In this document: one piece after another, positions 41,309 to 41,387 of the stretch
How the letters are laid out: the number at the start of each line of letters is the position of its first letter
How positions within the stretch are numbered: the first letter of the stretch is position 1
Source of the DNA: Octopus bimaculoides
Lineage: Eukaryota
Direction: 5' to 3'
DNA: 64,000 bases
Assembly (NCBI RefSeq): GCF_001194135.2
Contig: NC_068984.1
Location: 92,760,336 to 92,824,335 of the forward strand
Notes under the pieces: generated by a model
Database searches by the model: none
Seen by the model: only the letters and a program-made list of their open reading frames with translations
Told to the model about the DNA's origin: nothing
Made by a program: the position numbers and the translations under genes

Positions 41309-41387
41309 AATAAACTTGGTGATACACCACTTCACTCAGCTGCATGGAAAAGACATATTACAGCTGTGGAAATGTTATTGGACAAAG
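41309..41387 (+). CDS. OSTF1: OSTF1 coding exon (ankyrin 3, 79 nt)
   Basis: aaccag|AAT AAA...GAC AAA G|gtttgt; [26 protein letters not shown]. Confidence 0.95.

Follow-up and report, generated by a model that had tools for sequence, protein, structure and literature searches.

The window analyzed here, a stretch of 64,000 nucleotides from Octopus bimaculoides (contig NC_068984.1), contains exons 2-8 of a gene for osteoclast-stimulating factor 1 (OSTF1). Besides the exon that carries the site under study, which is exon 6 of 8, six further OSTF1 exons were placed on the forward strand by tblastn with OSTF1 proteins; exon 1 lies upstream of the window. When exons 2-8 were spliced in silico, the product corresponded exactly, up to the stop codon, to residues 18-217 of O. 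bimaculoides OSTF1 XP_052823219.1 (P0121), a protein of 217 aa. Pfam assigned SH3_1 to residues 24-69 and Ank/Ank_2 to residues 83-177, all above the gathering scores, and OSTF1 is recognized by this arrangement, with the SH3 domain at the N-terminal end, ankyrin repeats after it, and a length of ~215 aa. The closest natural solved structure was human OSTF1 (3EHQ, E = 1.9e-71, residues 10-213). Homologs at E <= 1e-10 numbered 410, and among the 120 listed, the named ones were mostly called "osteoclast-stimulating factor 1" and the others "hypothetical/unnamed protein." The splice product, the Pfam domains, and the match to 3EHQ identify the window gene, on homology, as the annotated OSTF1 ortholog, as the earlier note had recognized. 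The exons and the codon of interest are as follows, in window coordinates.

8359..8405, forward strand: OSTF1 exon 2, start of the SH3 domain (tblastn/splice product)
19247..19361, forward strand: OSTF1 exon 3, SH3 domain (tblastn/splice product)
30444..30535, forward strand: OSTF1 exon 4, ankyrin repeat 1 (EAARRGN), with Gly90 (GGA) at 30497-30499
33421..33540, forward strand: OSTF1 exon 5, ankyrin repeat 2 (WAAHGGH), with Gly123 (GGA) at 33481-33483
41309..41387, forward strand: OSTF1 exon 6, 79 nt, with AG acceptor and GT donor, encoding 26 residues and the first base of the following Gly codon
41351..41353, forward strand: Arg157 codon AGA of OSTF1, at Gly13 (turn T2) of ankyrin repeat 3 (sequence, alignment, AlphaFold2)
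54877..54966, forward strand: OSTF1 exon 7, C-terminal capping repeat (tblastn/splice product)
58134..58192, forward strand: OSTF1 exon 8, coding part through the TAA stop inclusive (tblastn/splice product)

Gene models of OSTF1 in public databases conflict with one another (window 8250-8358, 41388-41480, and 54967-54990; models P0122, P0123, and P0124). The O. sinensis RefSeq and older O. bimaculoides UniProt models begin in the intron before exon 2 and read past the end of exon 6 or exon 7 into intron sequence, and the O. vulgaris annotation comprises the last two exons only. In O. vulgaris, the ~35 kb preceding exon 7 did not contain exon 6, so this species is uninformative for the codon. 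Exons 1-8 of Argonauta hians OSTF1 span ~8.3 kb, compared with ~50 kb for exons 2-8 in O. bimaculoides; the Octopus introns are several-fold larger than those of Argonauta and are mostly filled with repeats. An (ACT)n microsatellite was also observed at 19180-19211, ~35 nt before the exon 3 acceptor.

The earlier note had drawn attention to ankyrin repeat 3, reading its codons as TGG AAA AGA CAT, with Arg at a position where the other repeats keep Gly. The window reads exactly so. The four codons occupy 41345-41356, which places AGA at 41351-41353 on the forward strand, and A41351 is nucleotide 469 of the OSTF1 coding sequence. The corresponding residues of repeats 1 and 2 are both Gly encoded by GGA, at the positions listed above.

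In the ankyrin position numbering of PMC8781854, Arg157 occupies the place of Gly13 in turn T2: it lies between helices 1 and 2, nine residues past the Thr of TPLH (position 4). In an alignment with consensus designed ankyrins (DARPin), it matched the Gly of their "AAxxGH" motif. The AlphaFold2 model of OSTF1 had a mean pLDDT of 86, and ~96 around the turn, where Arg157 falls in a non-helical segment (residues 156-158) between helices 149-155 and 159-167. Gly13 terminates ankyrin helix 1, is conserved in only 6 of 10 human ankyrin repeat clusters, and is replaced in some natural human repeats by other residues, including Arg (ANKK1 R736) (PMC8781854). Repeat 3 with Arg in the turn was modeled confidently, which is weak evidence for tolerance because the model is driven by the alignment. 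Positions 13 and 14 lie at the edge of the concave surface, so Arg157 may slightly shift the surface charge beside the binding face.

The orthologous codon was read from the genome assemblies of other cephalopods. It was AGG (Arg) in O. sinensis (L002) and AAA (Lys) in Argonauta hians (L001), and the three octopod genomes thus agree in having A at codon position 1; Arg is also the residue in both protein models of O. bimaculoides, RefSeq and UniProt. The Sepia pharaonis genome reads TGG AAG GGT CAT (Gly), and a second decapodiform transcript also has GGT. In a neighbor-joining tree, transcript P0028 was placed next to the octopods, and its cluster included numerous transcript contigs as well as OSTF1 of Sepia (Acanthosepion) pharaonis, each with AAWKGH or ASWKGH. 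No Nautilus OSTF1 was found in the ortholog search. From these codons, decapodiforms encode Gly at this position, whereas octopods encode a basic residue.

We also considered whether A41351 could be an assembly error or an individual polymorphism, with GGA as the true codon. This was rejected because O. sinensis AGG and Argonauta AAA share the A at position 1, so that three independent octopod assemblies (AGA, AGG, and AAA) exclude G in the DNA at this site; G in the DNA was one of the outcomes that the earlier note had named as refuting its proposal. Since both protein models of O. bimaculoides also carry Arg, we regard the probability of such an error or private variant as negligible.

Another G/A difference at codon position 1 was observed at 41369, 18 nt past the site, where O. 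bimaculoides has GAA (Glu163) and O. sinensis has AAA (Lys; L002 near 60086); this surface position holds E, K, Q, or R in other orthologs. An OSTF1-like exon with WKGH was found in a marine TARA metagenome scaffold (L003, 2647-2946).

Next, the site column was tabulated for 120 orthologs and O. bimaculoides. Gly was present in 97 of the 121 sequences, Asn in 18, Ser in 4, Lys in 1 (Argonauta), and Arg in 1 (Octopus), and Arg or Lys thus occurred only in octopods, which is the comparison that matters here because a chance statistic has no meaning for one codon. The matching Gly was found in 121 of 121 sequences in repeat 1 and 120 of 121 in repeat 2. By alignment, therefore, the Gly13 position of repeat 3 is the tolerant one of the three in OSTF1. 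The earlier note had called this turn a strongly conserved Gly, which holds for the near-invariant repeats 1 and 2 and for the majority residue of repeat 3, but not for repeat 3 in molluscs. Among 24 named non-cephalopod species, 12 had Asn and 12 had Gly, so the premise that Gly is required is wrong for molluscs; Aplysia, a non-recoding outgroup in the editing literature, belongs to the Asn group. As for whether Arg is common at this position in molluscs that do not edit, among these orthologs it was not seen outside Octopus, yet non-Gly residues are common in molluscs. AAWKGY, which the note gave for vertebrate OSTF1, is a vertebrate-type motif present in match P0116. Because half of the mollusc outgroups have Asn and no Nautilus sequence was found, the residue before the octopods could have been Asn, with a path from Asn (AAY) through Lys (AAA) to Arg (AGA) instead of a direct change from Gly to Arg.

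We then examined A41351 as a possible substrate of A-to-I editing. ADAR disfavors G as the 5' neighbor, and the context here is A-A-G, with A41351 in the middle. Adenosines that precede G in a codon are edited 2-3 times more often than those that precede C or T (Shoshan 2021 ST6/ST7, PMC8382921), which bears out the earlier note's statement that the context suits ADAR. Restorative or harm-permitting editing is an established, if debated, idea concerning a class with thousands of members (PMC6881472, PMC8382921), and restorative sites are those at which a nonsynonymous A-to-G change recreates the ancestral amino acid (Jiang & Zhang 2019, PMC6881472). Editing of A41351 would convert AGA (Arg) to GGA (Gly), as the note had proposed. 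Gly is the residue of Sepia (GGT) and of most orthologs, although the even division of molluscs between Asn and Gly leaves Asn as a possible prior state. Because the change would recreate the Gly that is genomic in Sepia, A41351 fits the sequence-level definition of a potential restorative site. It is not filed here as a recoding site, because that class is defined by an RNA-DNA difference and the predicted structures described below contain no duplex at the site.

The published frequencies of editing at such codons are low. In O. bimaculoides, 782 R>G sites at AGA among 13,225 AGA codons correspond to at most 5.9%, an upper estimate because ST6 and ST7 may use different gene sets (ST6/ST7, PMC8382921). 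The comparable rates from the same tables are 8.7% for AGG, 12.3% for AAG position 2, 2.7% for ACA, and 3.3% for ATT. A rate of ~6% at AGA is a low prior for the site. Editing is more frequent at restorative-type sites than at the remaining nonsynonymous ones, but its median level at restorative sites is <2.5%, and in squid a level above 20% is reached by only 13% of them (PMC6881472). The octopod OSTF1 sequences in the protein and contig collection, retrieved by cluster and by a search with the C-terminal fragment, were genome-derived models only. OSTF1 was not listed in those supplementary tables of Shoshan 2021 and Alon 2015 that were covered, and full-text searches found no paper linking OSTF1 to cephalopod editing in the literature covered.

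The RNA around the site was folded both as spliced mRNA and as pre-mRNA, the latter with five window sizes and in three species. In the spliced mRNA, the pairing probability of A41351 was 0.006, the eighth lowest of 204 adenosines. In pre-mRNA windows of +/-60 to +/-700 nt, it was 0.002-0.10 for O. bimaculoides, the O. sinensis values being 0.05-0.23, and the +/-10-nt neighborhood of the site was less paired than the window average. A value of 0.94 was obtained for Argonauta in one window (+/-200 nt), but it was unstable across window sizes. The local fold of 279 nt (z = -1.6) contained one hairpin at the site:

41337..41366, forward strand: small predicted hairpin whose outer stem joins two CAGCTG segments (41337-41342 and 41361-41366) and encloses an AUG/CAU stem (local fold)

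In this hairpin, A41351 lies unpaired in the 7-nt loop GAAAAGA. An RNAduplex scan of 51 nt around the site against a 21-kb stretch that includes the introns on either side reached -38.2 kcal/mol at best, and 30 shuffled targets gave -34.3 +/- 2.5 kcal/mol with a minimum of -38.9, so no editing-complementary sequence above the shuffled controls was found in this stretch. The earlier note had proposed folding the exon with its flanking intron to look for such a sequence; none beat chance, and the site was predicted to be unpaired. The double-stranded structure on which ADAR acts was thus not predicted at A41351, a result that is not decisive, and thermodynamic folds predict ADAR substrates poorly. 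In the introns beside exon 6, identity between the two Octopus species is 93-98%, similar to the roughly 89-93% of aligned non-coding sequence elsewhere in the locus, and codons for the same amino acid differed between O. bimaculoides and Argonauta at a frequency of 0.43 in exon 6 and 0.49 gene-wide. Neither comparison, of flanking introns or of synonymous sites, revealed a footprint of constrained RNA, at low power.

A dispersed repeat of ~480 nt is present in five copies in the window, two of them inverted relative to each other within intron 6.

4657-5124, forward strand: dispersed repeat copy
22578-23050, reverse strand: dispersed repeat copy
41435..41914, forward strand: dispersed repeat copy in intron 6, 48 nt past exon 6 (duplex arm 1)
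45396..45850, reverse strand: inverted copy of the dispersed repeat in intron 6 (duplex arm 2)
62615-62918, forward strand: dispersed repeat copy

The two arms in intron 6 were predicted to form a duplex of -463.6 kcal/mol (-183 +/- 8 kcal/mol for shuffles), in which 364 bases are paired and uninterrupted pairing extends over at most 24 bp. The copy adjacent to the exon is also present in O. sinensis. Long double-stranded RNA of this kind is bound by ADAR. The predicted duplex is a plausible substrate for ADAR hyper-editing and could recruit ADAR near exon 6, but it is a mere lead as far as editing of the codon is concerned because exon 6 itself lies outside it. Separately, a near-perfect palindrome was observed at 42599-43027 in AT-rich intron sequence (GC ~0.24), with arms of ~214 nt that are 95-97% complementary and 1 nt apart; either a foldback element or an inverted array of low complexity may account for it.

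From these results, Arg157 is very probably a fixed octopod substitution of Gly or Asn at a permissive turn and would be translated as Arg in most or all molecules. Octopods share a basic residue, Arg in the two Octopus species and Lys in Argonauta, and the cuttlefish lineage retains Gly. OSTF1 would then fold and work with either Arg or Lys, and editing would not be needed. Any action of ADAR on A41351 would be at the low level typical of coleoid sites, making it at most one more minor site of the restorative type. On the codon comparison, what octopods share is the basic residue and not a one-edit route to Gly, because Argonauta AAA needs two edits to reach Gly; a single edit there gives Glu, Arg, or Lys. 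Some observations run counter to this interpretation. Arg and Lys were unseen outside octopods, so the substitution would be an unusual one, and the A at position 1 is conserved in three genomes, as a selectively maintained editing site would be. The favorable 5'-A/3'-G context, the enrichment of restorative-type sites among edited ones, and the long intronic duplex that begins 48 nt past the exon point in the same direction.

In a rival explanation, A41351 would be a restorative A-to-I site, edited at >10-20% at least in neural tissue, through which part of the OSTF1 pool regains Gly; such a site would be either a harm-permitting relic or a two-isoform device. The ancestral state of Gly, as suggested by GGT in Sepia and in the decapodiform transcript and by the 97 of 121 orthologs, would fit this explanation, and the harm-permitting model predicts G-to-A changes (PMC6881472), the type to which the octopod substitution at codon position 1 belongs. 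The favorable 3' G, the A shared by three octopod genomes, the enrichment of restorative sites among edited ones, and the inverted-repeat duplex of the adjacent intron would also be accommodated. What weighs against it is that A41351 was predicted to be unpaired in mRNA and pre-mRNA alike, that the flanking introns contained no complementary sequence above chance, and that no local conservation signal was seen in introns or at synonymous sites. Moreover, position 1 of AGA is edited in at most ~6% of cases, with only a minority of such sites above 10-20%, and the Argonauta codon would become Glu or Arg by one edit and never Gly. We therefore consider editing at this level very unlikely; that A41351 is edited to any detectable extent is improbable too, though less so. 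An even slimmer chance is given to high editing in octopus neurons by ADAR brought in by the downstream intronic inverted repeat, with no duplex at the site itself, a route suggested by the predicted intron-6 structure.

The earlier note had gone further and suggested that the functional protein may depend on editing. In its strict form, Arg157 would be deleterious and OSTF1 would require near-complete editing in all expressing tissues, as at the Q/R site of GRIA2. Only general facts speak for this, namely that Gly13 ends helix 1 and that editing is heavy in coleoids. High levels of coleoid editing are mostly confined to neural tissue, whereas vertebrate OSTF1 is broadly expressed. Of the 121 orthologs, 22 have Asn or Ser at the position, and half of the named molluscs other than cephalopods have Asn; Argonauta carries Lys (AAA); the site is predicted to be single-stranded, with no duplex; and levels at restorative sites are mostly low (PMC6881472). 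These results do not favor the suggestion of the note: dependence of OSTF1 on editing is unlikely, and in the strict form its probability is close to nil.

The reading of Arg157 as a fixed octopod substitution carries a caution: residues that depart from the consensus by a single A-to-G step are common and are no evidence of editing. The comparison of octopods, cuttlefish, and other molluscs shows this turn of the ankyrin repeat to be simply a variable one in OSTF1. Were A41351 strongly edited, it would be one more coleoid restorative site of the type already catalogued, a neat structural case without a new principle; with high editing in neurons in particular, harm-permitting editing would be clearly illustrated by one residue at a structural position in a repeat protein.

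The Q/R site of GRIA2 is the paradigm of an editing-dependent protein (PMC8382921), and A41351 resembles it in logic only, in that a genomic codon lies one A-to-G change from the ancestral or functional residue. Several residues are tolerated at the OSTF1 site, and no outstanding or conserved complementary sequence was found for it. By contrast, GRIA2 is edited almost fully by means of a conserved intronic complementary sequence, and its unedited form is harmful. The sites of Jiang & Zhang 2019 and Shoshan 2021 are closer: like A41351, they are coleoid sites with a genomic A whose nonsynonymous change to G would recreate an ancestral residue, and the substitution at codon position 1 is of the G-to-A type. 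It is the observation of an RNA-DNA difference that defines those sites, whereas A41351 is a candidate from genome sequence and, unlike the catalogued restorative sites, is without a predicted duplex, local constraint, or a one-edit route to Gly shared by octopods.

On the protein side, repeat 12 of ANKK1 (Arg736) and the human clusters without Gly13 (PMC8781854) provide folded repeats with Arg or another non-Gly residue in turn T2, as in the octopus; they belong to proteins other than OSTF1, and the likeness is one of residue identity at the turn. Human OSTF1 (3EHQ/3EHR) and the metazoan orthologs share with the octopus protein the order of an SH3 domain, three ankyrin repeats, and a capping repeat, and octopus OSTF1 is ~60% identical to orthologs from cnidarians through deuterostomes. 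Within this conserved arrangement, octopods have Arg or Lys in repeat 3 (AAWKRH in Octopus) where 80% of orthologs have Gly (AAWKGH or AAWKGY), and the neighboring residues of helix 2 differ as well, being HITAV in Octopus, HASAV in Argonauta, and HVEAV in Sepia.
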